From assembly GCA_965202585.1 (NCBI GenBank), contig OZ241828.1, positions 41,044,001-41,108,000 of the forward strand: DNA of 64,000 nucleotides. Reading direction: 5' to 3'. The translations under genes were made by a program, and so were the position numbers. Shown piece by piece: positions 16,258 through 64,000 of the stretch (the first letter of the stretch is position 1; the number at the start of each line of letters is the position of its first letter). Origin of the DNA: Thalia democratica (Eukaryota). The notes below the pieces were generated by a model, which saw only the letters and a list, made by a program, of their open reading frames with translations, was not told the DNA's origin and made no database searches.

Positions 16258-16439
16258 GGTATCACTGTAATAGGTTGCAAAATTATACAAGTATAAAATA
16301 CAAGCTACTTTTGATTTTGTACTTTTAATTAAAAATGAATTTTTAGCATAACTTTTCGACTGACGTCACAAACAAACTTACTAGAAAGCTCCAAATGCAT
16401 AGTTACAATATTGCTAAAATTAATACTTTTGTATGATAA

Positions 16440-32700: not shown

Positions 32701-35700
32701 TTATGTTGCTATATTTTTTGGTGTATTTTTAGGGTTTAGTCGGTTATATCTACGATTTAGGTTTGAGTTTCTTATTTCTATTTGTTTCTGAATAATATTC
32801 ATACTCTCTTTGAACTTTTCCTGGCAGCTTATTGCTTCTTTGTCGGTAAACAAGAGTTCTCTAAACTCCCCAATATAGACCTATGGTATTTAGAATATTA
32901 AAGAGTACAATATCGTACAAAGAAGTATAAAAACTAAGAAACTACAGGTAAATTTGAATATTGCAAAAATATTTATTTGATCAAAATATGAAAAACTTAC
33001 CAGTACGTCATTTATTTAACTTAAATATCACGTGTAATTTGAATATTTGTAGCTTATTTTATTCTTAGATGTTTTTTAAATTAGATAACTGTCTTACGTC
33101 AGGTTCTGTAAATTGAGATAAAATGTAAGACATTGCCACTGCTTGAGCTGATTGTTTAGCGTCTGGTAAACTTTCTAGTATACGATGCATTGAACCCTGT
33201 AATTAAGTCGATTCAGTGTTCAATAATATCGTAAACCAGTTATTATCAAAATGAATTAAGATATAAAAGTGTATATTATTAGTCTAACATAACTTATGTA
33301 AAACTTATAAATAAAATAAACGAAGTCTTATGCAACTTTTAGAAAATTCGTAATGTACTTACTTTTTTTAATCTATACTTTAATGTTGAAAACTAAAATG
33401 CCGTTAATAAAGTGACTTTGTTTAAATGTTTTGTATTTTTTTATATGTTATAAATATCTAAAAACATTTTTTTATTAAAAAAGTAAATTTATAGATTTAC
33501 AGAAGCAAAAGTACGTGTACTTTTTTATAAACTATGCAAAACAAACCATTAGTTTTCAATAGTAAAACTTTCAAAGTAGTATTCTTTAACTTTACTAGTG
33601 TTTAGATAAAAGCTTTAAACATTGATTAGCAATCAAACTATAACAATGTATATTTATGCTTGGATCATCCTGTTTTCTAAACGACGATTTAAATGCAAAT
33701 AATATAGTTTTTAGAGCTAAAATTATAATTACTATAAAAATTTATTTGTAAAAAGTTTCATTTTAAAATATAGACAACCAAACAAGGACCAATTAATTTA
33801 ATTTGAATATAAATCAGTCATGGTCAATTAAACTGAAAAATAATTTTAACTTGTTAGTTTTTTTTTATCATGATTGAACCTATACTATTTATAGTTTATA
33901 CAAGTTTTTTAAACTTAAACAATAATTCTTTTCAATATACTACTGCAATTATTGCAATATTTCTAATTCTCAAAAAAAAAATCTATGTAGATTAAAAAAA
34001 AAGTAATTATACAAACTTCTCCCTTTTTGTGAGCAGGCAGATTCATGATAGTCGGTGAGTTAGGTACAAAATGATAATCATCAAACTGACCGAAGTTCAC
34101 TGCTGTGTGCTGAACTGAACATGTAAACATGATCGTTGTGCAGAAGTCGATCTTTAACAACAGTTTTGTACTTTAGAATCTCCTCAGTTTTAAAAAATCT
34201 TTAAGACTAATATTGTTAACTTGATAAAACAACAAGCATAGTTAGTAAAATAAAAACGAAAAAACTTGTTGAAGTATTGTACAAAATTTTAAGTTGTGTA
34301 AATTACAGTATAATTTTTTTTTAATGAGCAAAAAAATGGTTAACAGGTTTTTGTGTTATCTGCTTTAATGAAAATCTTGTTATTTTGATACATCATAAGC
34401 TATAAAACATTGCGCTCAGACAGTAAATTCTTCAGTTTATTAAATTACATGTTCAATTCAAGCAGCTGTAACATCATGTGTTAATACAAATTATTTATTT
34501 GAGTAAGTTTAAAAGTTATTGGATTTGTAACTCTTACTCATTAAATATTGTTTTGGACAATATTATTTGTCTTTAAAAAATACTTGAAAGTTATGTTTGT
34601 TTATTATTGGCCTTTACTCAGTCTTTCTTAATTAAACAAGATAAACTAATCTATTCAAGAAATCTATCTTCTACAATAACTTTTTTTCTGCTAATTATTT
34701 TAGTTTAATTGAATTACTTTTATATTAAAAAAAAAAACTATTTTATTATTAATGTTACCGTTTTGTACTAATAGAGGAGTTCTTGAACTTTAATTGTCAA
34801 CTAAATTTTAATATAAACTGCTTAAAATTCTAGATACTGTATCTTCTGACCAGGGATCGGCAAACTTCAGCTACGGTACACTTTTAATCTACGGTACACT
34901 TTTCAGCTAAAAGCGTTTTTTTTTAAACCAATGAAATAACTGCTTATAAACATATAACTTTGCTTATAAACATATAACTTGGCTCATAGTTTACTAGTTA
35001 GTAACTACTAATGCTTTATTATTGTGTATCCTATCACACTTTCGGTTTAAATTATATTTTTAGTAATGACTACATGTTTTATTTAATTGCGGCCCATTAG
35101 CAACTTTTCCTAGAAAATTTTTCCCGCGACTTATATAAGTCTGCCTACTCCTAAACTAAATTTCAAAATTAAGTATTCAGCAGAAACAACGCTTTTTTTA
35201 AATCTTAGTTTTACATAAGTTCTGTTTGTTATAACTATTTTTCAATTAAAAATTAAACGGTTTTATATTATAGTGTTTATTCTACTAATCCTTTTGTTAT
35301 AATTTAAAGTTGATACTTAATTTTATAGTAGTTTAATTCAGAAAATCAATTAACAAGTGATTGAATATCATTAAACTCAGTTGGAAATCCTCTTGTGTTT
35401 CCGTCCTCCCAGGCTATACCTTCTGTGACTATTTCATTAACCCAGTCTTGTATTTCGTAATCTTCAACAATATCCTTTTAAATAAAAAATATTGGATTAA
35501 CAAAATATGTAGCTCTGTATGTTGTTTAACTTATTTCATAGATATAAAAGTTCAAGAACTATACTTTTTTTCCTTATGATATAGGAACATAAAGTTGTTG
35601 TGTTATAAAATAGTATAGTACTTTTAGCCAGCTTGTTAAAATAAAGTCTTTAATAAAAAAACCTATATTTTTACTGAGAAAAACAGTAGTTTTTTTTCTT

Positions 35701-38700
35701 TATTAGTTTTTTTAGTTGTAAACATTGTTAGTAAACTTATGTTTTTATTAAAACCTATTAAAATTAAATATAGCGTAAAAGTTTCAATTAATTTAATCTA
35801 TAAATCTTACATAGTCATTTTTGTAATAGATTCTAAGTAAGTCATCTACAAAACTTTCAATTGCTTTCCACAAAGTCAGCGCATCATGAGCATACCAAAA
35901 ATTTGGGATTTTCTCAATCTTTAAACCTGCAAACAAATTCGATAGTTTAATTGATAAAATATAATGCAGATAGATACATTTTAAAAGCAGTATAGTTTTT
36001 TGTACAAAGGGTTTAGTTTTAAAGTAATTAAAACCTTGTTTAAATTTTTCTTTTAGTGTTAATTTATTATATTTAGACACAAAATAAAAACATTAAAAGA
36101 CCTAAAATAAAAATTTACAGATTTTGTACAATATTTTAAATTGTTTATGAATTAATTTTACATAAATTCATAAAACGATACTGATAAAAACTAAGCTAAA
36201 CTCAAAAAATATATAAATTAAACATTACTAATTGTAAAAAAAAACTTAATTCTTTTTTTCATTTTATTAACAAAACAATGTTTCACTTGTTTAGTTCAAA
36301 CAAGTGAAACATTGTTTTGTTAATCAAATGTTAAAATTTGAATTGATCATTCTCCTTATCATTAAATCGAGCACTTTTATTGTGATCTATAAAGTAAAAA
36401 GTACAGAATAAAGCTTAAAACTAAATGCTTGTTCAATGATCAATCTAATTTGAATAGACTAAACTAAAATAAATTCCAAAAACTTCTGAATAAAAATTGA
36501 CCATATAATTTTTTAGATTTAGTTATGTTTTTGGTTCCGAATTAAAACGTAATTGTAATTTTAATAAAGCTGTTAACTTTTTATGTAATCATTAGCATAA
36601 AAAATAATAACAGTTGTAGTTTATACACAGGTTGTTTAACTTTTCAAAACTAGTTACTTTAATCTTAAACATAATTTATTTTCCGCTAAAACAAATCTGA
36701 CCTTTTTCTATAATTATTCGAGGTATGTTCAACATTTCCCATTTGAAGCTCTTAAACATTTTCTTGATAAATGATTTTGCATCTAAAAATAAAGAAGAAT
36801 TAATTATTAAAAAAGTTTTCAAACTTAAGTATAATATAGTATCCACAAAAACTCTTTAAGTATACTTGTTTAGAGTCTTTACATAGAACTTTTCATTATT
36901 AAAAAACGAAAGTTTTACTTACTATTTATAGCAGGGTTTCTTAAAGTGGACCATATAGCCCCCTTAGGATCCATAAGCTGCATAGGGGTCAAAGGGGGAG
37001 TTAGTAGTTAAGGGGATGTAGAGGAGCACAAGGTCATAATTTGAAACTTACACTAAATACTCTAAAGTTCATGGTAAAGAGCAAAAAAGGTCTTATGCGT
37101 ATTTAAAGGCAGTTTTGAAACTTACACTAGGCCTGGGCTTAAGGTAACCATAAGCTGCAGAAGGGGCGAGCAAAAAAATAAATATTCATGAGTTGATAAT
37201 GAAGAAAAAAAAATCCTTAGGCGTATTTAACATTATTTTTTGAGAGAGGGGGCCATAGCTCTTTTAGTTTCTTCAAAGGAGGGGACACTTATGAAAAAAA
37301 AAATCGGAAATCCTGATTTATACAATGTTCAAGACTGAAAAATTCAACCAAACTTTTCGTTAGGTATAATACTGCATAGAAAAATCAAAATGTAGAAAGG
37401 GTTAGTGCTTGTCAAAGCTACGAATCGTAATATCGTTACAACAGATACACTAAGTTTTACGGGTGGGTGTATCTATTTTGCACGAGGGGACACTTTTGAA
37501 CGAAGACTTTTTTACCTTTTGGTAATAGTTTTTATTAGGTATACATTATTTTTGTATTACTGTTACCCCTACCGTTACCCTCGGTCGGTAATTTTTTTTT
37601 TTTTTTTAGTCTATGTTTTTTTCTAGTTTTTTATTCTTTTTTTTTTATTGTTTTATTTTTTATATATCATTTATACTATCACTGTTACCACTAACCCTTA
37701 CCCTCGGTCGGTAACTTTTTTTTGTCGTTTTCATTAACTAATCTTTTTTTTTTTTCTTTTTTTTTTACAAATTATTTTTTTTTTTTTAATATATATTTTT
37801 TACTCTCGTGCAAAAATGATCCTATGTCCAAAAGTGACCCATCATGCAAAAGTGACGCTCATGCAAAAGTGACTCGTTCCCAAGTTTTACCGGATGTATA
37901 CTTAAAATTTACGTATACTTGTGTTATAAATCGTTATTACTCTTTTTTTTAATGGAAACTTTATGTCATTTTTTTGTATGGTAACACCTAAAAGTAATTA
38001 AGTTTGAATAAAGTGTACATTTGTTTTAAAATAATTTTTATTTAATTTATTTTTTAACTAAAAATATTGTTCTACATGTTTTATTCACATTATTAAAAAA
38101 AGCTTAAATATAAAGAAATAAAGCAGCAAAAAAAGGAAGTTTAGTATCTAGTACATAATTTGTTGTACTTTGTGTTTTTATCTTAAAATAAAACAACCTA
38201 CTGTTACTTTTATAATTTTAAATTTTTATTTTATCATGTACCACTAAACTGAACCATTTTATTATCAACAATTGCCCATGACATACTATTCAACCTGGTT
38301 TCGCCCTCATTAGGACTCATCATGGGTACATAGTCATGGTGAATCGCCGGTCTAACCAAACGTGATTAATTAGCTTTGTATTGAAGCATCTATTTTTGGG
38401 TTAGTCGGGATAAACTAACGCAACTAAATTATCAAAACTAAAAGTATTATTTAAAACATTAAGAATTACCCACCAAGGAATAATTTTTAACTTGACCGGC
38501 ATTATTTTTTAACATATACACAGACACTTTATTTAAATTAAAAAATTATTAAAAAAAAAGTTAAAAAAAAGTTTTTAGACATTTTAACTTTGAAAAACAG
38601 GATGATTGTTTTATAGTTCAAGACAAATTGGAACGAAGGTAAAGTAATAAGCTTGTGTCGAACGTTTCTTACTTTTAACAGCGAAAACTGAAGTTTCCTA

Positions 38701-41700
38701 TAATAACATTAAAAAAAAGACTACAAAGTTAGATTGTTAACTTTGTTTTAAAAACTTGACCCGGTTAAACAAGTAAATAAGAAACAGATACAATAAAGTA
38801 GAAACGAATTTTTCTTCAAGTTTTTTTTTGGATTATTTAAAGCACTTCCACCTGTATTTTTTTCAATTTTTCAAAAATATGAAACTAAAAAAAATCTAGT
38901 TCATCGTTAAATATTAAGTAAAACTAAAAACGGTAATACAAAAAAAAAACTCTATTTAACTCTAATCCTATCAGAGAACTTTACCAAACTATTACTATTT
39001 TTAAACTCAATTTGTTATTAGTTATGATAGCAACTTTGTCGTAAAAGTTGTAGTAGGGTATTCGTTAAATATCATTTAACAAATACTCTACTACAAATAC
39101 ATTAAAAAAATTAAAATAAAAAACTTTACCGACGGACAAAGATCCAGCAACCTTTGACTTAGGTTGAAGTAAAATACTTCTTGCCATTGTATTGATCGAG
39201 AAAATAGTTTTGAGACTGGGTCTTAAAAGTTTATACACAGGATGGCATCTTGGAAGGCACCTAAAGAGTGCTAGTGCAATTGGTTCCATAATGCCATGTG
39301 TGTGCAAAAAGTGTGCTATCCACTGTTTAATTTATGTAAACTTATCGAACTTAAAATAAAAGAATCTTTAAAATTGTGTATAGTTTATTGAATATCAAAT
39401 AAAAAAGCAGTCAAAATATTTGGTCTTAGGACGACTAAATATCAAAGTATAAGCCTAAGTATCAAAAATAGCTTTAAGTTACCAACTCGGGGTAGCACAG
39501 ATCATTTGCATAAATAAAACAGTAGCAAACTTAAAAATTCAATTTTTTATAATAAAGTTATTAATTACTATACTTTAAAAGCAATTTATACATTTTGAAT
39601 GAAAAAATTAAACCCAAATTTTCAACTAATACAGCCACAACTAATGCAAATAAAAAAGATTTATAATAAAAATTATAAAGATACGTATGTTTATCAACTT
39701 AGAAGAAAATATTAATCAACGTCAATCTGTTTTCATGTTCAAACAACTTATACAGTTAATTACTTTTTAATTTGAAATACTTAATAGTTTTAAAGAACCA
39801 GTACCTAAAAATAACTATAGTTAAACTGGTCTCCTTTTTTATCGATTTTTATAATTATACTCTTATACTTTCTGTGAAATAACCGTGAAAATTGTTTTCT
39901 TTAGTTTTATTATTTTTAACTCAACCTTTTTTTAAAACATTTGTTTATTTATTTGAAAATGTTTACTTACCATGATTTTTGATCACTTTTAAACAGTTTT
40001 CGCTGATCTGTACAGTTTTAGCAATGAACAAACAATTTTTTACTCTTAATTACGTATCGATTGGTGAAAAGTATTTTAGTTTAGAAATAGTTAACTTTTA
40101 TTGATAGTACCTACTAATTACTATCACAAAGAGCAAACTAAAAACAACTTAATATTATCATTGTAAGACAGTTTAAACAAGAAACGTCTATTTCCTTGAA
40201 CAGCCAAGAATGATGCAACTAATAATATGTATCTAACACAAATAACATATTTCTAACATTTACTTTAAATTGCATACAACAAAATTATCTGAATAATATA
40301 TTGCTTTTATTACTTTTGAAAAAAAATCTTCAACGCCACTTTGTGATTTAATATAAAAATTTGGATTTTTTAGATAACATCATTAGTTTAAAATTACCAC
40401 AAATTAATTTTATAAAATCAAATTAAATATTTAATTTCACTTTAAAGCGTAACTAGTTTTAGCTCTACATTGTTTAGTAAGTATAAAAATAAACTAGAAT
40501 TCCGTACGAAAAATACAAAAAAAGAATTGTTTATTAATTTTAAATTGAAAGACAATAACTAACTCAAAGGTTTAGTTAAATGTTCATAAGGTATTTATTT
40601 CTTATTATTAGTTTTGTACTAATAGTTTTACCTCATGATAATTTGACAAGCTGCATCTATAGTGCATTTTAGCCAACATCCAATCAACTTGTGACTGACA
40701 ATCATCATGACCGGCAATATGCAAATACTGTCTATTACTCCGTTCTAATTGGATAGCAATAGGCACGAAATCGTCATTTTTGTTGATATATAAAAGAGCC
40801 ATTGCAGGGCAGCAGCTGGCCTTTTCGTTTGATGGTAAAGTTGTGTAAACAAGCTCATTTTCATCATCATTGTAAATAATGCTAAGATCAGAAATAAAAA
40901 CTAGTCCATTCTGTTGATAATTTTTTTATTAAACTAAAAAAAAAATCAAAAGTTTACTTAGCAAAACATAAAGATTATTTTTTGAAACTAACAAGGTTTT
41001 CTAAACTAACTTTTCGATCCTAATTTTTCTAATTCAGTATTTAGTCTTTAATTGAAAACTAGCGATGAAATAATTGTATAACTACAATAAAAGTAAATAA
41101 ATTTAAATTTCACCGAACAAATAATTTTTAGTATATCCACAATTTTACTAGTAAAAAATCATTTCTAGAAAAATTTTGTTTTTAAAACTAAATTTTATTA
41201 GTTGAAATGTAAAAAACAAGTTCATAGAGATGATTATTTTTTGGTATTATACACAAAAAATATAGCGAGCAATACAAATGTTTTTGTTTTATACTGATAA
41301 AAAGCGTTTAATATTATCAAAACTTATATTTCATAATAAGCAGTTAAAATATTTGATATCACTAAATATAACATTTTAAGCAGAAAACATTTTTTTCATT
41401 ATAGTTTTGCTATAAATCACATATTTTTACCTTGGTTTGGTGGTATCTTAAAAACTGTAGAAGTCGTCTTTTATGAAAGTTCTTTTCAAGTTTGTTTAAA
41501 AGGTGTTTAAGTTTCAGTTAAAAAGCTACTGGTAGATTAAAAATTAAATTAAGTAGTTAGTGCAGAGTTTGCCAGCCGTTTGTGAAACAAAACTTACTCA
41601 TGGGCCAAATATAAAAAAAGATATTTTGCTGGCCGTCAAAGTTTAGTGTAACAGCTTAACAAAAAACTGTGTTAACAACTAAACTATAGAAGACTTACAA

Positions 41701-44700
41701 AATTAAATTTTATCAGTTGAAATTAGTTTAAAGAATTTGAAATTAGATTCTTTTAAAAAGATAAGTTAAAAGCTAATTTTTTTTTGCAATAATCTTGCTG
41801 TAGTGTGCCAATACCTGCAGTAAATATTTACTCTAAATAACATATTAGAACAAATTATTAAAAAGAAATCAGTCACTAAACCAACTTTTAGAAGTATTTT
41901 TTTGATGAGTTTGAAAACTACTTATGTTATGGTATTAAAAATGTTAAACAAGTTTTTATTAAGTTGTTTACCAACTTTTAAAAATCTTATTGTAGCATCA
42001 AAATAAAGAATTTGAAACTAGTCTAAACCGTATAGTTTTTAACTTTTCTCCAAAATAAAATACAGGGTTATGTCGTAAATCAATTAAATAAATAAAAAAC
42101 AATTTTCGTGTTAAAGGTATTATCTCCTAAGAATGCTGTGATACACTTGTTTGCTTTTAAGTAAGTTTATATAAAGATTAGAGATTTTAGATTTATTTAA
42201 ACACTGACGAGGTCTTTGACCGAAACTTAGTTTTTAAAATAAATTCTTGTAAGAATAAATTCATTATTTCTTCTCTAGTAGCTGAGATTTCATGATTTGT
42301 TTTCTTAAAACCAAAACATAAAAAAAAAGAAAAGATTACAGTGTTGAAAAGTAGCACAAAAGTTTAACACAAGACTTTGAACTAAGTAGATGCGACTGTG
42401 AGCTTTAAATAATCTTTAAATAATCATCGTTTACAACACACTCTTTAAAATGTAAAACTGTTGTAGAGTTACTTTAAGTACAAAAAAAGTATTTAGTTCA
42501 ATGCAAACAATATACTTTAATCGCTGTTTAAAGTGTGACAAATCATGGTTTTTATCTACAAGGAGTACCTTTGTTGTTTAGACTCTTTTTTGTACCAAGA
42601 TAGTTCTTTTTATGACAATTTAGGTTAAAAAATGGTCAAAAAACTGACTGTAAAATGTTTTTTAAAGTAAAATGAAATATAAAAACTTAAAATACTCTTA
42701 TTTCTTCTTCTAAAGTTTTTCCTGTTCTAAGTAAATGTTTAACATCGTTGTTTGTTACATTAAAGTATGGAGGAATTTCATGGCAAGATTCAAACGCAAG
42801 TGGTAAAGTTCCATTAAGAAGCTGCCATCCTTGTCCTTCGTCTGTCTCCCAGCTTTAATATAAAGTATTATAATTAGTTTTCTATTTTGATTATGCAAGT
42901 AAATTTTGAAAATGATGATTCTTGTCAATTTAAATTAGATTATATAAAAATATTTCAAAAACTAAACTTACTTCTTTACATAGCTGTTTTGAATATCAGT
43001 GGTCAACATACAAGCGAATTTTTTGTAGTCATCAAGGGAGTTTATTGGATGCAGCAGTGCTATAATAAACAATTAAACTTGAAACTGTTTTAGATTAACT
43101 TACTTATGAAGAGAATATACTATAAAAGTTAACAATCAAAAATTTGTTCAGTGTTATTATAAAAAGTAATTTTATCAAACTTTTTAATGTATTCTTAAAA
43201 ATTGTGAACGTATTTTAATTATACTTTAAAGCAGTAAAATATATTATATGCTTTAACTTTTGTAAATAGTGTTTATCTTGATACAACCTATAAACCTCTT
43301 ATTTTTCCTATAGTTGTTGTAAGTCTGCTTTTCAAGACGTTGTGTATAAGATCTTTACCTCTTAAATGTCCTCGCTTAAATATTTTCGGCAATTTATCGC
43401 TGCTTTTTGCATTAACAAACCTACACATTCCTTGTGCATCACTATTGTGCTTTGTCCATTCAAAATCACACTTGTTTTTGTAAACCTCCCGTTTTCGAGC
43501 TTGTATGACAACTTTGTCAGTTTGTTTTTGAGGTATTATTGCTAAAAATTAAAGAAAAAAAATAATACGGTTGTTAAAAAATATCATATTTACAAAAATA
43601 TGCAGCTTGCAACATTGATACAACGAAAATTAAAAAGCTATTAATAAGCGACGGGTCTCTTGATAAGCAGACCGGTAAGCTTTATTAGGTTAGGGTTTTT
43701 CTTATTCAAAAATGCAAGGATAAGCGACTGCTCAACTTTAATGATACTATGTATATTATTCTGATCAAGTAAATTTAAACTATTAGTTGTAGTTGTATGT
43801 ATTTAAACAGCTATCATATATTATTAGTTTATGTTCTTCTTTTTCTTTTGGTATTTTTAAAATATTTTCTAACAAGGTTTTTTTAATTTAAGATTAAACA
43901 AAAACATGTCGATTAGTATATGTTGCCCTTATTGCATGAAACTCACTCAAGACTGTGACGATAGCTAATCAATAGATATCCAAGCTAAAGAAAAACTTCG
44001 GAAACAAGGTTATTAGTTGGACAAATAAGATTTATGTTTAGATAAAAGCAAACAAAATTAGTACACAGAACAAAAAAAAGAAATGATAGCTTTTTACTAA
44101 AGTTATTTGTTAATTAAGACAAAATATTAATAACCCTTTTATTTATAGTATGAAATGTAAAAATGATATTTCTTATAGTTAAATTTTATTGAACGACACA
44201 AAAGCGCTGAAAATATTTGGTCCTAAGACCTGGTGCACAAAAAACCATTTGGTTATCGAGTCACACACCACGGGTTTTAACCTCTTGTCCAGGACAACTA
44301 TAGGACAACTTATATTCTAAACTATTAGTAAAAATAAATGAAAGTCATTTATTATAAATAAACTCATGATAATAAAGTATTTGCTTAAAACTTGTTTAAA
44401 AACCTAAAAATACTAAAACTAGTTCTAAAATAAGACAAAAACTGACTAATACAACTATATTTTACACCAGATAACTTAACACTACATTTCCTAAACTTAT
44501 AAAATAATTACAAATTCAAAAAAACGTTTTTAGTAAACAGCTATATACCGTAAGTTTATGTATTGAAAAAAAAAACCTTACTTTTGAAGATTAATGTTCA
44601 TATTCACTATTTACTGTTAAGAACATCGAATATCTTTGTTTATTATGTTTTTTAACTTTTATTAGTTTTGTGACAAACTTATTCTCGGTAATACGTTTAA

Positions 44701-47700
44701 TTTATTTGTGTTTATATTTAGCGACAAACTTTAAATTTCATATACTGACAGTAAAATTATAGTTTTTTGTTTAAATTTTTTTAAATATCTTTAGCGAAAT
44801 TACAGTTAAAAATTAGTTAAATTGTTATACACTAACATTAAAAATAGTTGTTATATTATATTTTAATACAAAACTAAAATAACAAACTCCTTGATAAATT
44901 TTTTTCCAAGAAAAAAATATTTAATTAATGTAAAATGATAGTTTAAAATTGTGGCAAACAAATGAAAAAGAATGTTATTATAATGAAGGTACTTTTGTGT
45001 AAATTAATTTTATTTAATAGTTTAAACCTTTTCGATCATTGCAGTAAAGTTTATTAAAAATAATCTTTACCTTTTTTTATTTTTTCAAGTTCTACGTGTC
45101 AATGAGAATAAATTAGCTAAAATAATTAGAAGTTAGTTAGGCATAATTGTACACAATTTCCTTTGTGTCTATATACTATAAAACAGAAAAATGTTTGCAT
45201 ATAACTTTCAATTAACAACCAATTAAGATTACAGTGAATTCAACCATGCAAATGCTCATCAAGCCAAATATTTTAGATTTTGTTATTTTAAATAACTAAT
45301 GTTTTATATTGTATGCAATTAAAGTAAAAGTATTTTCTACATGTTTCATTATAATTGACAGCTTTTTATTTGAATTCCTTCCATTACTAACATCAATCTT
45401 ATTTTTTCAGCTACAAATTTTTCAATGCTTAATATTTAATTTTTTTGAAAACTTAAATTTAGCAGCTATACTGGTTTAATATATACAATTTAAAACAAAA
45501 GGACTTGAAGTTTTTTAAATACTTCACATTGTGTTACAATAAATACATAATAAACATTTTGTACTTAAATTTTATGTAAGTTTACTTATTTACTAATTCA
45601 TTTTCTAAAAAAAAGTAACGTAAATTAAAATAAATATATAAAAAAGCATGCTTAAAAATTTACTCTTCTCAAAAATACAAACTAAATAAAAACCTTTGAT
45701 TTCTAAGGATAAGTATTTTAATAACTCTGACTTGTGTAAGAAGTTTATTAAGAAAGTACTTCTTATTTATTTAAATCTGTTGAGTATGTTTATTATAAAG
45801 TTAATAAATATGTTAAACAGTTAATTGTTGTAATAAAAAACAAAAAATATAAGTAAGGACTAAGAGTTGTTAAGTTTAAAACACTTGTTTAAAAAGCACT
45901 ACATTTTATCTATTTTGGACAAACACACTAAATAGAAACAGGAGTTACCTTTTAAGGAAAACGTTTAAAGCAAAACTTAGTTTTAATAACACTTTTTAAC
46001 TCTATTAAATAATATTTAGCTCAAATATAAAACAAATTTTAGACCTCTTCCTTCAACAATGTCGCATTTGTCTGAAATGTAGCCATATACAGGGAAAAAT
46101 ACTTCCGAATCATTTTGACGTTTAACAGACACATAATCGCACAACCAGTCGTCTTTAACGTAGAATATTTCGCGTAATCCTTTTTCATTAATTATAAATT
46201 AAAAAAACGTATGATAAAAAGTTCATAAATAAATTTTTATACAATTAGATTTGAAGTATGAGTTGACCATTTGTTAGACTAATTCAAAACTAAACTGAAT
46301 AATAATATTCTTTAGGGAACAATAAACGCTTTAAACGAAATGTAAACAACAAAGCGTTTTAATTTTTGAAACTAAATACTATTCATATAATTTTCTGAAT
46401 AGTGTCGGCAAATAACACAGTTTTATTAAAAAAGTATTGATATGAAGCAAACTTATACTTTTGTATTTAAAAAGAAAATTAAATTACTAATGTGACAATT
46501 TTTTTCTTCAAACTTTTTTATCTCTCAACTTTTCAGGAGCAAAATTATTTTTAACTAACTTATTTTTACTAGTTTTGGAGTACCGATATCTTTTATTTTA
46601 ATGTTAAAAACGTCAGTCGAGCCGTTTTTAAAGTCATCATTAAATCTAATGTCCAGCAAAATCCATCCAGTCGTGTTTTCGACTAAATTTGTTCCAACTA
46701 GTTTTATATATACATCTGAGTCTGTCCCTGCATCTTTATACATTTCTGAGGTCTAATTGTATAACAAACGCATTTTCGTAAAATGATAACATTTGTATAT
46801 TAAAATATAAAGTTATTTTTAACTTTTATAAAGCATATTAGAAAAATACGATTCAAAATATGTAGTTTGTATTGTAATGTATTGAAAATGCATTAAATTT
46901 TCCCTGCTTACTATTTTTTTTAATTTATTTTTTTTCTCTTTTAGTTTTCATTAATTTTTTATACTACTTTATATTTTTTTACTCCTCTCATAGTCTTTAA
47001 TTCCATTGGTAATGCATTACAGTATAATTAACTAACTAACTTTCAAAGTTAAAAATTGCTTAAAATATTTTTACAGTTTCTAAAGTTTTGTAAACTTTAA
47101 GGACTTTAGAATAATTCCTTCGAATTTATAACAAGTATTTGAATAATCTATTTTTCATAAATCTATTTACAATGGATATGGATTTAAGTGCTTAATTTTT
47201 TATAACATTTAAAAAAGTACAATTTTTTCCTGTAAAAAGTAAAAATCTTGTTTTTTACTGATACTATAGTATAAAAACGTTTTATGAATTATAAAAATTA
47301 CTGTTTATAATTTTTTATTTTACATACTCAACACGCTAGTTTAAAACATTTTACAGAAGTATTTAAATAATGATAAAAGTTTAAAAGTATAAGCGGTGCT
47401 TAAAACCTTTTGAAATATTTGATAAAAAGACAGTTATTGTAAACGGAATTTATAAAAAAAAATGTAATTTAACTAAATACTAAATATTATCTTTTTTTTA
47501 TTAAACAATGATGAATATGATATTTAGTAGTTAAATTTTCATAATAGTTTTAAAACAAGCTACTACTATTACTTTTTCAATTAAATTACTGTGTGTGACA
47601 AATAACATTTTCTAAATTAGATTAGTTTATTGTTATAAAAAAGCTTAGTAAAAAAATAAACAGTTTAAATTTAAGATGCAATTAACTTTTTTACTAAACA

Positions 47701-51939: not shown

Positions 51940-54900
51940 ATGAGTAGTAACACAACTACTTATAAAATCACGGTAAAAGTGAGTTCAAAGTTATATACTT
52001 TATTATATAAATGACAAAAGTGGTTTTTTAAATCAATTAAAATTCTCTCTGTTAGCTTTTTGCTGTTATAAAATTAAAGTAGTATAAGTAATAATAGCTA
52101 ATATTTATGTTGTGCTAATTGTAAAAACATGTGTTTTTGGGTAGCATATTTACTCGTTTGTTATCAAGTAACTTTATAAGGTGACCTTTTAGAAAAACGT
52201 TAAAACAATTGCTTTAAAAAATGTTTTAAGTTTCTATAAAGAAGAAAAAAGTGTATATCTGTAATTTACTTTTTGTCTGACTAATTTTTTTTAATTTTAC
52301 GTTGCATCACCAACGAGTTACAAAACTAAATAAAAAAAATTCTGTATTTTCTTACAAACTAGAAATTTATACTTATGGTGAAATAGATAGTTATATCCGT
52401 TAGACCTTATAAAAAACAGTATATGTAATTCAGTTTTTTTGTTTAAGAAATAAGTACTATCAAGGAATAAGTTTATTGTAGCAGTTTCCTAGTTTGGTAT
52501 ATAATGATATTAGTCATACTTTATGCTTAATATTTCAAGTTTTAATCGAGATTTTTATCTTTAACTTTATTCAACTAAACTGTGCGATAACTATAGTTAC
52601 AATTTCAAAAAACATAGCGGCTAACTATTTGTGTTTTACGAATTATTTAAATTAGTTATTAAGTACAAAACATCTTTACAAACTTATTTTAGACTTCTGA
52701 CGCTTACAGAGATGCGGGCACAAATTCGTATGTTTATATAAAATTAATTGGTTCCAATGGTGATAACGTAAAAACTGAATGGCATCTTTTGGATATTTTA
52801 CTCAGAGATGATTTTCAATTAGGAGCAACTGATGTTTTTTATGTAAAGATGAAAGATGTTGGGATACCTAAAATCATTAAGATACGTTGGTCTTTTGCAT
52901 TATTAAGTTTATTGATCTTTATTTTTTTTTGTTTGTAAAAAACTACATAATTCTAAAATAGTTTTTCTTACAATTTTACAAACACATATAAAGGTTTATA
53001 TGTATGCACTTTAGTTTTACGTAACTAAATAACTTCTTTATTTAAAAATATCAATAGTACAAAAAATAATTTGTTTCTTGAAAAGAAAGTAAATTTTTTA
53101 ACATAAAACTGTTTTTTATTATTTTATTATTTATTAAGGTCTAGTAACAATTATAATATTTTTTAATACTTATAAACTATGATATTTAATCGTACTTACA
53201 AAATTTTTGCAAATTAGTGAACAAAAAAAAACAGTAGTTTAGTGTTTTATAATCATAAAAGTATTTAAAATTTTGGTAAAAGTTTTTTACCACAGCAATG
53301 CATGAAAAGCCTAACATTTGAGTTTAGTTGTTTATTGCACAATACTCAATTTCAATTTTTCTTTACAATTTAAAAGTTTATTAAAAAAAATTATATACAA
53401 ATCTTAAAGTTTAAAGCTGTTTAATCCTTTTTATATTTAAAAAGTCACGTCAACATCACTCCTTTTGAATAGCAAACTTATTATATTTTTTTCGAAGTAA
53501 AGGAAAAAAATACATCTATAAAAAAAAAAGCAACGCACTATTTACACGAATTTATAGTAAAGTAATTTTCAAGCAGGAGATTCTACGCTAAAAGGGCAAT
53601 ATCGTTCTGTTTGAAAAAAAAGTTATTTGATTAAAATATGCCAGCAATTTTTTTCTTATAGAATGTTTTTTTTTAACTCGGGTTTAATGCATCCAAAAGT
53701 AAAAAAAAAGTACTTTAGGAATAGACGATTGGCTTTACGTAAGAGATGAATGGTTGTGTGAGACAATATCTGTTACACGTGATGATATCACAGTTTTGTT
53801 TCCGGTTTATTCATACATTGACCACGAGTACGAAATAATGGATGGTATAGGTTGGTATACGAAATTAAAAACATAGATTTAAAATCTGACTAACTTAATA
53901 ATTTAATATTTTATAAGATAATTTTTTACTTCAAAAATCGCGAAGATAAATTTGTCTTGTTTTTTTCTAAGCTTTAGTTAATATAATTATGAAAAATATG
54001 CATCAAAGTTTAAAGCTATCTTTAACTACGCTATTTGACTCTGGTAAAACATGAATAGCTTAAACAATAGTATAAACTAGATATATATAACTTCTACTTT
54101 GTGTTCAATTTTAACCTCATGTTTAAAAGCATAATTGAAAAAACGAATGTTTGAGAACTTTTTAAAGAAAGTATACTCAAATGCAATACGATATAAGAGG
54201 TCATTATTTATGCCCCATCTTCTCTGAATGCTTTTAGAATTAGTATAGCACTTTGATTGATTGAAAATCCCAAGACCAAATAAAGTTTTAAGAACATTTT
54301 GAAAACTATGTGCTACTATTAAATTTTTTTTTAGTATTTCATTATTGTGGTATTGAAACAAAAAGCATTAAAAACCTAATTTCTACTTGACGGGAATAAA
54401 TTTCTATCGAATTTAAGCAAAAAGTTTTTTATTTATATAAAAAACTATTTTAAATAAAACCAATAATTTTAACAATTTTTTAAATCAGCTAAACTTCCTC
54501 AACACGAAGCCTGTAGACGCCGCATTAAAGCTAGGTATAAGGAAATTCAAAGAAACAAAAATGAGTTCCAATGGGTAGATAGAAAAGAAGCTTCTAGCGG
54601 AGTCTGTAGGTATGTTAAAGCATCAGGTTACGAGAACTTGCCTCGTATATTCAAGCGTACTTTGTCAAGAGAAAGAGGTTTAGACGGTCATAGGTTTTTA
54701 GGACAACTGAATGCAGTAATTGCTCGAGTTGAAGGTATGCTATTTATAATTGAAGTTTATTTAAAACGATTAGAATGAATAAATGACCATCATAAAAAAA
54801 ACAAAAAACTTTAATTATGAAAATTTTATTATGTAAATTTTATTATAAAATTTTTAGCAGTATTAATTTTTTGAAAAAAAACTACAATTGTATGTTGATG

Positions 54901-57900
54901 AAAATATTTTTTTCAAAGAAAAGAAAACGATTTGTTGATTATAGTGTTATAATGAAAGTTATCTCATCATGTTATAAGTAATATAGAATAATAAGTTTTA
55001 TAATAACTAATTTGTATCATCGTACACTGTACTGTTATTAAAAAGTATATATTTTCACAAGCTAAAGTTTTAAATTTTATAAATAACTATTTTTTATTTG
55101 TTTTTATAGTTTTATTAAAACGATAAGTAATAAATTTAAGTTTTGTTCATTTCTATTGTTATTCTTGATTTTTTTAGTTTTTCTTTTTTTTTACTTGTAT
55201 AGTACATATGATTACATATTTTTTAATATCAACATTTAGATCAAAAATAAAACACCAAAGATTTTTTAACTAAAAAATCATACTAACAGTTTTCCATGTT
55301 TTTTGAAGCTTCTATTAGAACTTATTATGTTTTAGTTTTTATTTATACATTATTTCACTAAAGTTTGGTTTCTTTTTAATAATGAATAAAAAAAGCTTAT
55401 GCTGGTGCATCAAAGACAACAAAACAATTTGAAAAAACTTGCTGCTAAAACTTATTTAATAATTAATATTAAAATTTGAACAAATTTTATTTATTAAGAT
55501 AATTATTAAAGGTAATTTCTTGCAGAAACTTTTCAAAGTTTGTATCTTCCTTATATTTTTACTGTTGAAAAGTTTTGTTCTAAAAATAAAGTTTATCTAT
55601 AAAAGCAAGTTTATTTTAAAGATATAAATGTTTATAGAGGTTGTTAGCCATATTGTACATTTAAATTTTTAAATAGAACATATGCACGTGTAAGCTTGTA
55701 TATGTATATATAAAACGGTGTAATCGTGCTCAAAAAACAATGTTTTACGTAAGTTTTATTAGTACTATACATATAATATACTTTATACAAACTAGTTTAT
55801 ACAAAGTTAATTTTATACTAGTTTCAAAAATAATTATAATTCATTTTAATAACTACTTCAAAACTAGTAAACTTTCTTGTTAACCTATAAACATTATAAT
55901 GTAAATAGAAACAAAGGCATATGTATATAAATTTTCCCCATATGGAGATATGATAAATACGTTCTTTTGGTAAAAGTTACTTAAATAACATTGTTTTGCT
56001 TAAATAACAGCTCATCAGATTGAAAAAAAGTTTCACAAATAACTAAACAAGCTTTTTTATGTTTCATGATTTGTTCTTTTAGCGAAACGGTGTTACTAAA
56101 ATAAAGTTCAACAAAATATTGCTGTTAATATATAAAAATTAGCATTAATAATAGTATGTTATACAAAATGAATTTTTAACTCAAAAATAATGTTTATAAA
56201 CTATGTGTAATAATATCCTATAATAGACTATTTGTTTTGTAATTGTTATTGATCTACATAAAGTATAACATTAATAACGTCTTACAACTTTTTTATTTAA
56301 AGATGATGCACATATTATACCTCAAAATATTACATTTAATATCAATAATTAAACTAACTTGATAACAACCAAAACAATAATACGAAGCAATGGTTATAAT
56401 GTTGAGAAAATTTATGTTTTGTACAAATACAAGTTAACAGTTTTAGCATAACATTCTGTTAGTGATTTATCTTACAGTTATGTATTTTAGTTATGACTAA
56501 AAATCGTTTTGTTTAATATTCATTAATGTTAAAAAAGTAGTTTAAAACTAAAAGTTTTATAATTAGTATTTTGTTTTAAACAGCATTTTAATTTGTATTT
56601 TAATTTAAACAGCATGCTTTTAATAATATACAGTTTTAAATAAAAAACATATAATGCTAAGCCTTTAGAACTTTTAAAATATCTAAGTGACGCTAGGAAA
56701 ATTCATAACTAAAATATTTTAATTTTTACTTTTTTAATGTATTAGTATAGAAGATTCAAATGAACATTACATTGAAAACGATAACAATTTTTTTTAAGTA
56801 ATTTAATAATATTTATCAACAAAATACTATTATAAATGTATGTAGCTCAATGAACTTAATTTTACACAGTTTTTAATAAACTGTATTTGTTTTAGCTGTT
56901 TTTAAGCCTATCAAATCGCTGGAATGTTATTGGAAATTTTCACAAATGTTGCTGCCTGAGAAATTGGAATATGTAAAAGAGTAAGCTTTAAGTTTTGTTT
57001 CAAACATTAATTTTTAAAAATATTTTATTATTAAAAATGACATTCAATTAAATTAGGTACTTTATAAAAATCGTATTAGTAATTGCATTTATTACTAATC
57101 AGAATTTATCTTTTAGTTAAGCTACTTCATATGCTATTCTACAAGTTATGTCATATCTTTTTTTTTTAATAATTGGAAAATTTAGCTCAACAAACTTTTT
57201 TTTTCTCAATTGTTATGTTCTAGTAAGAAATTGAAAATAAATAATTAATGCACTTTTAAAATCTTAGTTTATTGCTTAAAAAAATATTGGAACAGGTCAA
57301 AATTGCACGAGGTTACTTAATTGCAAGATGGGAATAAATTGCACGAGAACAAGTTTGCACGAGAGCACAAAATTGCACGAAGATACTTTTGCACGAAGAC
57401 AAATTTTCACGAGGGAACAAAATTACACGAAGACAATTACACGAAGACTCCAATGGTCAGTTTTGCACGAGTTACACTTTTGCACAAGAGTAAAAAAAAA
57501 AACAAAAAAACAGAAAATAAAAATAAACAGAAAAAAAACTAAAAGATAAATTAATAACAAAAAAAAAAAATTACTGACCGAGAATTAGGGATAACAGTGA
57601 TAGTAAAATAAAAACTAATAAAAATTATTATCAAAAAAAAAACATTAATTAAAAAAAAAAGCTACCGTCCGAGGGTAAGGGTTAGGGGTAACAGTGAAAG
57701 TTAAAAACTAAAAAAAAGTATTAGTAAAAAAATCAACCCGTGCAAAAATTTATCCATCAAAAATTGTCTGCTCGTGCAAAAGTGTCTTCGTGCAAAAGTA
57801 TCTTCTTGCAATTTCATCCCCTCGTGGAAAAGTGTCTTTGTCCCCTCGTGCAATTTTGTACGCTGGTGCAAGTTTAACAGCTACCCAAAAAATATAGTTA

Positions 57901-60900
57901 TACTAACTAAAAAAATTCGTGCTAATTTCACATTATTCCAAGTGATGTTTTACACAAAAAGTCGAAGTTCTACACGTAAAATTAAGTAGTCTAAAATTAC
58001 TTTTTTTTTTTTTTCGTTTCTACAAAGTTTATTAAAGTATTATTAAAGTTTATATTGACACCCAATCAATTTCTATTTTAGACTTTTATTTTATTATTTT
58101 TAAAAGATGAAGTACAATAATGTTTTAAATCAGGTTTTGTAATTCGGTTAATGGCTTGTAGTTTTAAATTGTTTTTAGTCAAAGACAATTTTTAAACCAC
58201 TAGACCTCAATTAAGAATTAAACTATTACTAAAATTATAAATAATATTTTAATACAAATCGTAAGTTATCGTTTAAAAAAAAATATGTAAAAAGTTTTTA
58301 TTATAATTTTTTTGGTCTGCTAAAATAGCTAAATATATCTAACATAATATATAAAGATTGAAAGATATTAAAAAGTCATTCAAAGAAACAAAAATGTTTT
58401 TTTTTGTAGAACTTCCTTTATTTATTTATAGTTAATTATTTTTTGTAAAACTATTTACACATACTTAAATGTTGTTTTCAAATGATAAACATGTTTAAAA
58501 GAAGTTCTGTATATATAAAAAATTATTGATGAAGTCGATGAACTTTTTTATTAAGTATAATTAGATTTTTTTTAAATTATGAAATCCAGAAAAGTAGAAA
58601 ATAAAATTCGAATTTTAATTTATATAAATGCTGTTTAGGAAATTAAAGTTGACTTGTTTTATATGAGAAATCCTTAAAGTAACTTTAATAAAAACTTTTT
58701 AGCAGTTAAAAATGTTATTATAAGTAAAAGATGTTTTATAAAAATTTTGTTTGTAATATCAAAAAAGTAGACAGGTGATGGTAAAAACTTATCAGTTTTA
58801 TTTTACTTTTTATTTCCATAATTGTTTATCTATATACAGTTTGTAAGAGTCGAAAAATAGTTTCAAAGTACTTGCTTATCATTAGTTTTTAAAAGTTCTC
58901 TAAAAATTAATTTTAGTTTGAAGTTTAATATTACTAGCATAAGCTGGTTCTGAAAGCGTGAGACTGTTGCTTTATAAATCTAGTTTAACACTGTGTTTGA
59001 TGCTTTTTAAATAAAATATGAACAAACAAAAATTTTTAACCTTTTACGTTTTATTGTTCAAAAATCAAAAGCAAATACAAAACCAATGTATCTTAACTTG
59101 TATAGTATTTGAGTTTAAAAATGTTAATTACCAAATATTTAAGCTGGGAGACAGACGAAGGACAAGGGTGGCAACTTCTTAATGGAACTTTACCACTTGC
59201 GTTTGAATCTTGCCATGAAATTCCTCCATACTTTAATGTAACAAACAACGATGTTAAACATTTACTTAGAACAGGAAAAACTTTAGAAGAAGAAATGAAA
59301 GTAAATAATTAAAACATATAATAATTATATGCTATTCGAAAATAAATTACTTTTTCAGGAAGAAAAACTTAAGTTTAAAAATAAATGTTAAAAATACTAA
59401 CTTTACTCGTTGACGGTAACTTAAGTTTTTATATATTAAGATGTTTTGAGCAGTTTTTATTGATAATAATTTCCAGTAAAGCCAATATAAACTTTACTAA
59501 CTACTAGCAAACAAATTTTCTAAATAAAATCAAAAGATAAATCATAAAAATTTATCATTTGAAAAAAATAATGTGAAAACAGTTTATAAGAAAAATTTCT
59601 TAAATATTATTCTGTATAAGTTTGTGACATATTCATTATCAGAAAAAACTAAAATAACTATCTTTGACATTGAAACAACTTAATTTTAAATAGTATTAAG
59701 ACTCGATAAAGAATTCGAAGTACTTTAACTTTTTTTTTAGTTCAATAGTAAATGTCAGAATTTTTTATTTGTTTATACCCGATTTTGATTAACATACTTT
59801 TTTAGACCGGAAGAGTATTCATATCCGATTTGAGCAAGATTTACTTTGATAATAAAGATCTTGTTTACACAACTTTACCGTCAAAAAACGAGGCCAGGTG
59901 CTGCCCTGCAATGGCTCTTTTATATATCAACAAAAATGACGACTTTGTGCCTATTGCTATCCAATTAGAACGAAGTAATAGACAGTATTTGCATATTGCC
60001 GGTCATGATGATTGTCAATCACAAGTTGATTGGATGTTGGCTAAAATGCACTATAGATGCAGCTTGTCAAGCTATCATGAGGTACTTACATAATTTAATA
60101 AAATCTATTTTTCGTGTTCTGTTTGTAAACTACTACAAGATAATGTTATAATCCGTTCAACTAGTCTTTTTTTTAAGTTCTTATATTTTACTTTAGCCTT
60201 TTAATCTTTAGATGAAAATATGCAACTTATTTAAAAAATAATTTGTAAATGTAGATTTGCTTCTCAAATAACAATGTTCAAGAATATATATATAAGTTTG
60301 GTATAAGTAAAATATTAAATATACCTTCAATAACAGGTTTACTTTAGATAGATATTTAATTTAACTGCCTAATGAATAAAAAAATATTAGTATTATAAAA
60401 ATAAATTTTGGCAGCAGATCCGACTTTGTTAGAGTTTATTAACTTTAATTCATAAGATTTATGCTTAAAATGTAAGCAGCTAGATGTTAGGTGCATTGTA
60501 GGGTGGGAAATGTGTGGAAAAAGTTAGTTCTTTGCAGGCCGGAGCACTTCATTAAATTCACAAAAATTTACTCGATTGTTCAATTAATTTTGACAAAGTA
60601 CTTATTCTATATAACTTTTTTCACCATAACTAATGTAAGCTTCAAGTTCAGTAAATTGTACCTAAGACTTTATTTTGCTCTTCATTTCAATCTCAGAATA
60701 TCTAGTGTAAGGTACAAACATTTGTTTAGCGGGCCATTTACATGCTCGAGGTCTGCAGTTTTTCTTTTCGCAACCGGTTAAGTTTCTTTAAAGCTAAGAT
60801 TCCACTTCAGGTTTTTTAAGCATTGGCGGGCCGATCATACTTCGTGGGTCGTACGGCCCCTAGTATTAAACTTAGAATAACTTTGTCTGTTTTGTCATGG

Positions 60901-63900
60901 ATTTTGTAATGTAATTTCTGTAGTCTTTAACTTATCGTTTATCATTTTTATTTTACTTGATTTACATATTACGGACTATATTTTTATATTCTGTAAGTTT
61001 TTAAAAAGTAAAAATTGAATGTTTCTGTTTATTTCAAATGGCTACATATAGTAAGTTTATAATAATATTGTTGTACTTAAATAAAGTTTTTTTTTTAAAA
61101 CAGTGGGTTTATCACTTTCTGCATTGCCATTTTATAATGGAACCTATTGCGTTGGCTCTTTTTAGATGCTTTTCAAAAGTTCATCCAGTATATAAACTTT
61201 TAAGACCCCACCTCAAAACAGTCAATGCTATAAATGAAGTGGGTAGAAAAGTTTTGCTACCTAAAAACTCTAGACTTTCAAAGGGTTTAGCAGTAGGTTA
61301 GTAGTTTAAAATAAGTAAAATTGTACATAATTAAAAGAAAAGAAGTGCGTATTTAATGTAGCTAATACCAATAGTAATAAAAATTTTGAAAAGCCGTGAA
61401 TTTAATTGTAATTGTTTTTTCTTTTTATAAATATTTCTTCGCACATTACAGGCTAAATAATAAAAATTATTAGCTTTAGAGTCACCATTATAAAGTTTTA
61501 AACGCTATCGCTCTGTCAATTTTTTATATAGAAATTAACTTTTAGCAACTACGATTTATAAAAACAACATAAATAATATTCCTAAACTTAAAAATTGAGT
61601 TTCATAGTTTTAATTTTTCGGCTAACATGAATAGTTATAACTTTATTAATTTCTAAAATAAAAGTTTTTAAGTAACTTGTTATAAAATCGTTATAATAAG
61701 TTTTTTACCCAACTAATGTATTTACATTCATTTTTGGAAAGCTTTTAAATTACTTTTGTTAATTTCATTACTTTTAGTTTTTATAATTTAGCTCTAACCA
61801 CAAAATAAATGTAATTTAAAACGCTTATTGTTATAAAATTTTAAGCTAAGTCGTAAAAAACGTAATGCCATTATTACAAGTCTACATTTAGATACTTTTT
61901 AGCTCAAGTGTTCTAAAAGACACTTTATACTAGAATTTGTCGTAAAACACTAAACATATATTTTATAGACCCGTTCTCATTTGTTAAAAGTGGCTACAAA
62001 GATTTTATGTGGAAAGACCTTTGTATACCCGAAGTAATAAAAAATAAACGTAAGTTTCTAAACTTCTTTTAACTTTCTACAACCTATTTTAAAAGCAATA
62101 TACCTATTTTAATTTTATAACTTAATTAACAATATTAGGTGAATATATTTATAAGTTATTTAAAAGGGCTAATGATTTTTTTAGGCTTATCTGAAAAAAA
62201 TATACCAAACTATTGGTATGCTAATGATGCGTTGAAAATATGGAGTTTAATGGAAAGCTTTGTAAAAGAGTTGCTAAGCTGCTATTACATGAATGATCAA
62301 GTAAGTGTTTGCATACAATAAAATAGAAATTCAATTTATAAGTTCTCTGAAACGTTATTTGTGTGAAGTTTTTTTTTCTTCTAAAGACAAATAAGTTTAC
62401 AAAACTTTAGTTATGGAAACTTTATAAACAATTAATCTTAAAGTATGTAAAAAACAAAAGTTATACAAGTTATTGAATTACTTTTGACTTAAGTAATAAA
62501 TACTATGTATGGTTAAAACCGTTTAAGAAACTGTCTTAATTCTATAGAAAAACTTTTCTAATATTTTTTTTTATTAAAATAAACATTATCCATCATGCCT
62601 GTTCATGTTTTAGAAACCTTATTGAATAAGAACAATTTATAATGTTTATTTAAATGTACCGTACATAGTGTCTGTAGATAAATTAAAATAAACATACAGT
62701 CAATTTTTTTTCTTTGAAAAAAGATTTTTTCTTGTTATTGAAGTTGTTTAAATTAGATTAAAGTTTTTTAAAGCTTTTTGGTCTAATATAAGAATAAAAA
62801 CAGTTGTAAAACATTTTGTATAGAATCTTGATTTTTAAGTAACATTGTAAATAATACTATACACATATATATATTCAAAGAATTTAGTCATTGGCTATCA
62901 TTAGATAACAAAAACAAGTTTTCTTGCATATTCTTTAAAAATATTAAACATTAATTATAATTTAAGTCGCCATTTAATTCACTTTTAGTTTAATAAAATT
63001 TACTTTAAATAATTAATAAACTATTATCTATTGCTTTTCTTACTAAAAATTGACAATCGACATTTATTACGAGTAAAGGCATATTTAAATAGTTATATTT
63101 ATTAAGAAAATACCTTTATATTTTGTTATTTAAGTTTATAAGTAATAATATATAATATATATTCAATGAAGTACTTAAGTACTTAAGATTTATCATCAAA
63201 ACTTAAAGTCGAGTTAGTATAAACGTTTAATCACACTACATGGCATACGCAAGTCTAGGCTTAGGTTCTGTGGACTTTCGCCAATATTTTCTATACAGTT
63301 TAAAATTAACAAAACTACATGGTTCAGTACCATAAATATGTTTCTTAATTACATGAAACTAAAGCACTGTGTTGAAATTTTTTGCAACATGTTATTTTAC
63401 AGGATGTAATAGATGATACTGAACTTCAAGATTGGATACATGAAATAGTAACAGAAGGCATCGCATGGGAAGACGAAAACAATAGGGGCTTTCCAACTAG
63501 CTTTTGTACTATCAAGTCTCTGGTTAGTTTCTTACTAAACACTTATGTTATTGTAAAACATATATATTTGTAAATCTTTATGCCACGTTTTATCAAAGGT
63601 CGATTTCAGCACTACAGTTATGTTTACGTGTTCTGTTCAGCACACGGCTGTGAACTTTGGGCAGTTTGAAAATTACCATTTCGTTCCCAACTCACCTGCT
63701 CTTATGAACCTACCGAGCCACAAAAAAGGAGAGGTAATATAAGCTTATTAAAATAATACGAATTTTTAAAAACTTTGATTACAGACTGTTTTGCGTACTC
63801 TTAAATCTATGTTTGATAATGAAATGCATAATACATAAATAAAAGAAGAAATTTCAACCTAAAATACTACCAAATAATTTTTTAAAGAGAAACAACACGT

Positions 63901-64000
63901 TTTGAAATTTTAGGGCTCGATGGAAAGAATTTTACACAGTTTACCTAACCCTAGTCAGTCGGTATTGGCTATTGCGATGACGTATGGTTTGTCACAGCTA
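51940..64000 (+). CDS. Lipoxygenase (PLAT + catalytic domain), paralog of LOX-A, runs off the window end (LOX-B)
   Basis: Exons 51940-51978, 52693-52885, 53719-53850, 54489-54734, 56896-56980, 59144-59300, 59806-60081, 61104-61296, 61969-62049, 62185-62300, 63403-63522, 63599-63733, 63914->64000. Same intron positions and phases as LOX-A. Motifs YKITVKTSDAYRDAGT, HEWVYHFLHCH, QHTAVNFGQ. Confidence 0.92.
57288..57886. mobile_element. MULE-like MITE
   Basis: Same ttgcacga subrepeat arms and central motif (twice). 9-bp TSD aaaaaatat (57279-57287, 57887-57895). Lies in an intron of the plus-strand lipoxygenase. Confidence 0.75.
60500..60862. mobile_element. Probable degenerate hAT-type MITE in a LOX-B intron
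   Basis: GC-richer island with gcgggcc subterminal motifs typical of hAT MITEs. TIR and TSD not resolved. Confidence 0.35.

Follow-up and report, generated by a model that had tools for sequence, protein, structure and literature searches.

A head-to-head pair of tunicate lipoxygenase genes carrying alanine and glycine at the Coffa-Brash site, predicted to encode an S- and an R-lipoxygenase

In the mammalian epidermal cluster (human 17p13.1), ALOX12B, a 12R-type lipoxygenase (LOX) with Gly at the stereocontrol residue, lies beside the Ala-type ALOXE3 and ALOX15B, giving R- and S-type paralogs left adjacent by local duplication. Here we describe a locus of this known kind, local LOX duplicates that differ at the stereocontrol residue, in a tunicate, a separate lineage in which the duplications were independent; the tunicate member is new, but the system is not categorically so. 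The locus consists of two divergently transcribed genes, LOX-A and LOX-B, and lies in a 64,000-nucleotide stretch of DNA (contig OZ241828.1 of assembly GCA_965202585.1, positions 41,044,001 to 41,108,000 of the forward strand), hereafter the window. Among enzymes of solved structure, the best relatives of the LOX-B lineage are two coral R-LOXs, the 8R-LOX of Plexaura homomalla (PDB 2FNQ, 3FG1 and 4QWT) and the 11R-LOX of Gersemia fruticosa (3VF1), and the best solved match to exon 8 of LOX-A is human 15-LOX-2 (ALOX15B; 4NRE). The ascidian proteins predicted as "allene oxide synthase-lipoxygenase protein-like" (Ciona, Clavelina, Phallusia and Styela) are likewise a mixture of Ala and Gly types, and the literature that we searched held no biochemical characterization of them. 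Unlike these ascidian LOXs, the subclade of LOX-A and LOX-B is otherwise represented only in ocean metatranscriptomes. According to a 2026 review, Ala at the Coffa-Brash site directs S and Gly directs R oxygenation, and a Leu four residues further on is described as coupled to this switch (PMC13059375). In mechanistic terms, the same review pairs a 12S-LOX with an 8R-LOX and not with a 12R-LOX, the partner enzyme acting on the same face at the other end of the pentadiene (PMC13059375).

The window is AT-rich (22-33% G+C). The open-frame listing and Pfam matches revealed two sets of PLAT and Lipoxygenase exons, one lying at 32.7-47.8 kb on the minus strand and the other starting at 51.9 kb on the plus strand and extending to the end of the window. 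We built the gene models by comparing the exons of the two paralogs with each other and with the closest full-length homolog, P0004, and by considering every frame-compatible GT/AG pair at each junction. LOX-A (minus strand, 14 exons, 686 residues) runs from an ATG at 47783 to a stop at 32701-32703, and LOX-B (plus strand, 14 exons, 683 residues) starts from an ATG at 51940. The initial annotation had proposed a LOX paralog pair with the same intron positions and divergent starts about 4.15 kb apart, and the models agree on both counts: both open reading frames (ORFs) are intact, the two start codons are separated by 4,157 bp, GT..AG is found at all 26 intron ends, and 13 of 13 introns fall at identical codon positions and phases. 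The end of LOX-B needed a correction, since the window ends within exon 13 of this gene; exon 13 continues to 64012 and exon 14 (64192-64371) ends in NVAI-stop, and these final 371 bases were read from the genome sequence beyond the window. The PLAT family PF01477 matches exon 2 of LOX-A (E 1.5e-6), to which exon 2 of LOX-B is 58% identical, and it is also present in P0173, the ortholog of LOX-B. The Lipoxygenase family PF00305 matches exons 8 and 12 in both genes and, in LOX-A, exon 10 as well. Overall, the two proteins are 60% identical.

The two enzymes differ at the residue on which the Coffa-Brash rule turns. Each exon 8 was compared with all PDB chains by phmmer; the alignments used were free of gaps, and the numbering was checked through the aligned iron-ligand His. 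Ala426 of LOX-A aligns with Ala416 of human 15-LOX-2 (INTLAR) and with the Gly of the 11R-LOX motif INTLGR, and Gly423 of LOX-B aligns with Gly416 of the G. fruticosa 11R-LOX (INTLGR) and with Gly427 of the P. homomalla 8R-LOX (IDTIGR). The Ala/Gly contrast that had been claimed for the Coffa site from the sequence thus falls exactly on the residue that mutagenesis and structures have defined in the characterized R- and S-LOXs, and its codons were also read correctly, GCA (39182-39184) in SINTMARSIL, which appears as tgc on the plus strand, and GGT (61242-61244) in AINEVGRKVL, both in exon 8. The invariant Leu at +4 is kept in both proteins (Leu430 in LOX-A and Leu427 in LOX-B). The iron ligands of LOX-B are His380, His385, His561, Asn565 and Ile683, and every canonical catalytic residue is kept; those of LOX-A are His383, His388, His564 and Asn568, with Thr686 as the terminal residue, which has the carboxylate but an unusual side chain.

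LOX-B resembles the coral R-LOXs in its PLAT plus LOX architecture, its iron ligands, the Coffa Gly and the Leu at +4. With the 8R-LOX in particular it shares a small Ala in the pocket, since Ala580 of LOX-B aligns with Ala589 of the coral enzyme, where LOX-A has Thr583; the residue at +14 is also small in LOX-B, as in the coral 8R-LOX, and is Ser in LOX-A. Full-length alignments of the proteins to the solved LOXs were obtained, and P0173 matched the 11R-LOX with an E-value of 4.6e-97 and the 8R-LOX with 8.6e-93. Identity to the coral enzymes is only moderate, and the tunicate proteins differ from them in that no GGGG-H motif follows the Coffa helix and no allene oxide synthase domain is fused to the LOX. 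LOX-A has the motif INT-x-AR in common with 15-LOX-2 and differs from it as a tunicate LOX whose Ala is secondary, derived from a Gly ancestor, and whose terminal residue is Thr.

We read the locus as an old inverted LOX duplicate in which LOX-B is most likely an R-LOX and LOX-A most likely an S-LOX, a reading to which we give a probability of roughly 0.55. An animal-type LOX gene of a marine tunicate would have been duplicated in inverted, head-to-head orientation. LOX-B has retained the ancestral Gly and most likely acts as a coral 8R/11R-type R-lipoxygenase on C20/C22 polyunsaturated fatty acids. LOX-A changed from Gly to Ala (GGN to GCN) after the duplication, has remained under purifying selection, and most likely acts as an S-lipoxygenase. 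If the substrate is bound alike, LOX-A and LOX-B would deliver O2 to opposite ends of one pentadienyl radical, in which case the products would not be enantiomers but would be distinct in both configuration and position, as in the pairs 8R/12S and 11R/15S. The initial annotation had predicted opposite enantiomers, which was the wrong expectation because Ala/Gly partners under the Coffa-Brash rule differ in both position and configuration (PMC13059375). Our best guess is a partnership of the 8R/12S or the 11R/15S type; product chirality, substrate and any co-regulation are predictions throughout.

Several points weigh against this assignment. Exceptions to the rule are on record: zebrafish LOX1 is off-rule as a Gly-containing 12S-LOX, and Gly is no guarantee of R chirality (PMC6612559, PMC13059375); the A410G exchange in M. 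fulvus LOX1 was without effect (PMC6612559); and "a few exceptions" are acknowledged in the review (PMC13059375). Zebrafish LOX1 is a vertebrate enzyme and serves as a caution for the Gly rule, not as a relative of LOX-B. On a tree of 39 proteins, mostly tunicate LOXs, the Coffa site changed at least 11 times, and with changes this frequent, a single one does not by itself have to signal a change of function. In the literature searched, we found nothing direct on the enzymology of Hydra or tunicate LOXs. The documented exceptions would fit an alternative in which LOX-A and LOX-B, for all their Ala/Gly difference, both yield products of one chirality or poorly controlled mixtures and diverge mainly in position or substrate preference; the site changes on the tree, together with two Ser paralogs in the genome, suggest the loose constraint that such an alternative would imply. 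We consider it unlikely, because most characterized LOXs obey the rule, the coupled Leu is present in both LOX-A and LOX-B, and the closest solved relatives of LOX-B are true R-LOXs with Gly at the site.

Further cautions concern LOX-A itself. Its last codon, ACA (32704-32706), is a single transition from ATA (Ile) and gives a Thr where Ile or Val would be expected; catalysis may be weaker or different as a result. The terminal ligand is described as "usually Ile, very occasionally Val" (PMC13059375), and Ile is C-terminal in 12 of 12 aligned homologs and in 31 of the 38 other proteins of the tree. No LOX-A ortholog or transcript was found in protein searches with P0004 and P0173, and a metagenome scan with exon 8 of LOX-A gave no ortholog and a single distant locus. 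In comparison, the protein and metagenome searches did recover P0173, the ortholog of LOX-B, as an assembled mRNA in the Tara Oceans and JGI metatranscriptomes (two records). The LOX-A branch is also somewhat longer than that of LOX-B (0.38 vs 0.30). These observations could indicate that LOX-A is impaired, silent or neofunctionalized, for example as a hydroperoxide-transforming enzyme, leaving one working dioxygenase at the locus. We regard this as quite improbable, since the iron is bound by the main-chain carboxylate, a group present in whatever residue is terminal, and since Val, Leu, Ala or Ser is C-terminal in a few other members of the family in the tree. In addition, the other four ligand positions of LOX-A, its 686-codon ORF and its 13 splice sites are intact in a genome of 74% A+T, in which stops arise easily. 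The LOX-A branch carries 24 nonsynonymous and 23 synonymous changes over ~1646 and ~412 sites, giving an omega of roughly 0.26; the value was counted by parsimony at codons identical in the other three sequences, and its roughness belongs among the cautions. Judged from these codon changes, LOX-A is under purifying selection, with no decay.

The animal that carries the pair had been tentatively taken for Hydra. It is instead a tunicate, as seen from the mitochondrial code, the position of the LOXs in the tree and marine metagenome DNA; therefore, the proposed link to the 11R- and 12S-hydroxyeicosatetraenoic acids of Hydra falls away. The COX1 gene (contig G000:C1833; L021:1441-2937) contains 34 AGA/AGG codons. 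Within its first 237 codons, 11 of the 16-17 AGR codons stand at an invariant Gly and none at an Arg, in comparison with sea-anemone, octopus and diatom sequences; for example, a conventional reading gives FFRHPEVY in place of FFGHPEVY. In this alignment AGR is read as Gly, which is the ascidian mitochondrial code and is decisive for a tunicate host. Near-identical DNA is present in marine metagenome runs. An exhaustive HMMER search with exon 8 of LOX-B and word-index protein searches returned no cnidarian among the top matches, and the nearest named LOX relatives are those of Clavelina, Ciona, Phallusia and Styela, at 36-41% identity. In the maximum-likelihood tree, LOX-A and LOX-B nest inside a clade that holds all ascidian sequences, with a support of 100. 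The nearest COI fragments (Tara "merc" fragments, up to 92% identity) and P0173 stem from Tara Oceans data, and either a planktonic life or an abundance of planktonic stages is probable for the animal. The tunicate cellulose-synthase hallmarks GH6 and Cellulose_synt had no Pfam match in the genome, a blank that carries no information, since the gene is rich in introns and was sought one exon at a time. In Ciona, 8- and 12-lipoxygenase products are reportedly among the eicosanoids described by Knight and colleagues in 1999.

The history of the pair can be followed through P0173, which shares 87% identity with LOX-B in the columns that align and has an identity of 57-61% with LOX-A. The three sequences group as (LOX-A,(LOX-B,P0173)) with a support of 99-100; therefore, the duplication is older than the split from the source species of P0173. 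The Coffa site is Gly in LOX-B, in P0173, in the sister sequence P0172 and in P0170/P0171, from which it follows that Gly is ancestral and that the switch to Ala occurred on the LOX-A lineage. P0173 does not contain 48 residues that correspond to LOX-B positions ~188-235, a stretch running from the last part of exon 4 through the whole of exon 5 into the first part of exon 6. Because this gap does not coincide with exon borders, its cause may be the use of alternative splice sites, a difference in gene structure or an error of assembly.

Exons 6 and 7 have a history of their own. The nucleotide identity between LOX-A and LOX-B is 97.5% in exon 6 and 89.5% in exon 7, in contrast to 49-77% in the other exons, and P0173 is equidistant from the two copies in these exons; the intron between them shows no match between the paralogs. 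The pattern of identity indicates that, after the species split, gene conversion copied LOX-B sequence into LOX-A. The homogenized tract ends one exon before the exon with the Coffa site.

We next consider the layout of the locus, which the initial annotation had interpreted as a co-regulated module with a single bidirectional promoter, selected for paired R and S oxylipin signals. In favor of this interpretation, the genes are divergent and just 4.16 kb apart from ATG to ATG, and exon 8 has stayed diverged beside the homogenizing exons 6 and 7, which is compatible with selection separating two specificities. However, bidirectional promoters are usually defined by start sites within about 1 kb of each other, and of these features the pair has the divergent orientation but, at 4,157 bp between start codons, not the close spacing. 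The spacer and 5' flanks also showed no similarity between the LOX-A side and the LOX-B side. A search of sequencing runs for this organism turned up none of RNA. The only notable feature of the spacer is a near-perfect palindrome (51127-51360; 115-nt arms, 91% complementary, 4-nt loop) at ~0.6-0.8 kb upstream of the LOX-B start codon, which may be an insertion resembling a miniature inverted-repeat transposable element.

The rest of the genome also argues against such a module. It contains at least 15 LOX loci that are distinct by exon 8, of which ~8 have Ala, 5 have Gly and 2 have Ser at the Coffa site, so that two loci drawn at random would form an Ala/Gly pair with a probability of about 38%. 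Head-to-head orientation recurs in two other LOX pairs, G000:C2:24016940(-)/24036248(+) and G000:C2:61241652(-)/61264544(+), with exon 8 spacings of 19 and 23 kb, compared to 22 kb for LOX-A and LOX-B. Both are Ala/Ala, and the exon 8 sequences of the partners are ~88-95% identical, which reflects either recurrent inverted duplication or concerted evolution. Since these pairs are Ala/Ala, the divergent layout is not tied to the Ala/Gly contrast, and their existence makes this layout a recurrent outcome of inverted duplication in the genome. We therefore hold a selected, co-regulated module to be highly improbable, and the head-to-head layout is better seen as a trace left by inverted duplication than as a designed module. 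The pair is an unexceptional result of local duplication within a LOX family of 15 or more loci. The apparent Ser residues occur at G000:C2:53222327 (INADSRDFL) and at the very divergent G000:C6:59460204 (SATISRKNI); Ser is seldom discussed for the Coffa site.

The inverted duplicate with a predicted R-LOX and a predicted S-LOX offers a natural Ala/Gly experiment on one protein background, with 60% identity and the same gene structure, through which the reach of the Coffa-Brash stereocontrol rule in invertebrate chordates could be examined. Likewise, the Thr terminus of LOX-A is a natural test of the weight of the terminal side chain in iron binding. A fuller picture, which we consider very unlikely as a whole, would be a planktonic tunicate with a divergent 8R-type/12S-type pair, in which gene conversion is still evening out exons 6 and 7 but selection shields exon 8 from it, the two products, partner hydroperoxides from one pentadienyl radical, form a paired oxylipin signal, and LOX-A is active with its terminal Thr. 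If true, LOX-A would be the first natural active iron lipoxygenase with a Thr at its metal-binding C-terminus.

The coordinates of the two genes and of the features discussed above are collected in Table 1.

Table 1 Features of the LOX-A/LOX-B locus, in window coordinates.
Feature	Position	Strand	Remark
LOX-A gene, ATG to stop	32701..47783	-	gene model; PF01477 + PF00305
LOX-A exons 1-7	47783-47745, 46752-46560, 46179-46045, 43541-43296, 43059-42972, 42852-42696, 40910-40632	-	
LOX-A exons 8-14	39322-39130, 36782-36702, 35926-35811, 35474-35355, 34151-34017, 33196-33098, 32880-32701	-	
LOX-A exons 6 + 7, homogenized with LOX-B exons 6 + 7 (59144-59300, 59806-60081)	40632..42852	-	
LOX-A exon 8: His383, His388, Coffa-site Ala426 (GCA 39182-39184), Leu430	39130..39322	-	
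LOX-A last codon ACA (Thr686) + TAA stop	32701..32706	-	atypical C-terminal iron-ligand residue
Intergenic spacer, 4,156 bp, between divergent start codons	47784..51939	.	
LOX-B gene, ATG to window end: exons 1-12 + most of exon 13	51940..64000	+	gene model
LOX-B exons 1-7	51940-51978, 52693-52885, 53719-53850, 54489-54734, 56896-56980, 59144-59300, 59806-60081	+	
LOX-B exons 8-14	61104-61296, 61969-62049, 62185-62300, 63403-63522, 63599-63733, 63914-64012, 64192-64371	+	
LOX-B exon 8: His380, His385, Coffa-site Gly423 (GGT 61242-61244), Leu427	61104..61296	+	

In addition to these features, an Rfam scan of positions 30000-64000 gave no match. A repeat of ~360 bp occurs in two non-homologous introns, at 37476-37839 (intron 8 of LOX-A) and at 57455-57797 (intron 5 of LOX-B). 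The two copies are 68% identical and rich in short ORFs that resemble basic peptides, and they probably belong to a dispersed repeat family. Elsewhere in the window, an intronless ORF for a very basic protein is present in two copies (7815-8717 and 15389-16290, minus strand); a stop divides the second copy into two ORFs. The two copies lie upstream of an intron-containing HSP70 gene at ~25-29.5 kb.

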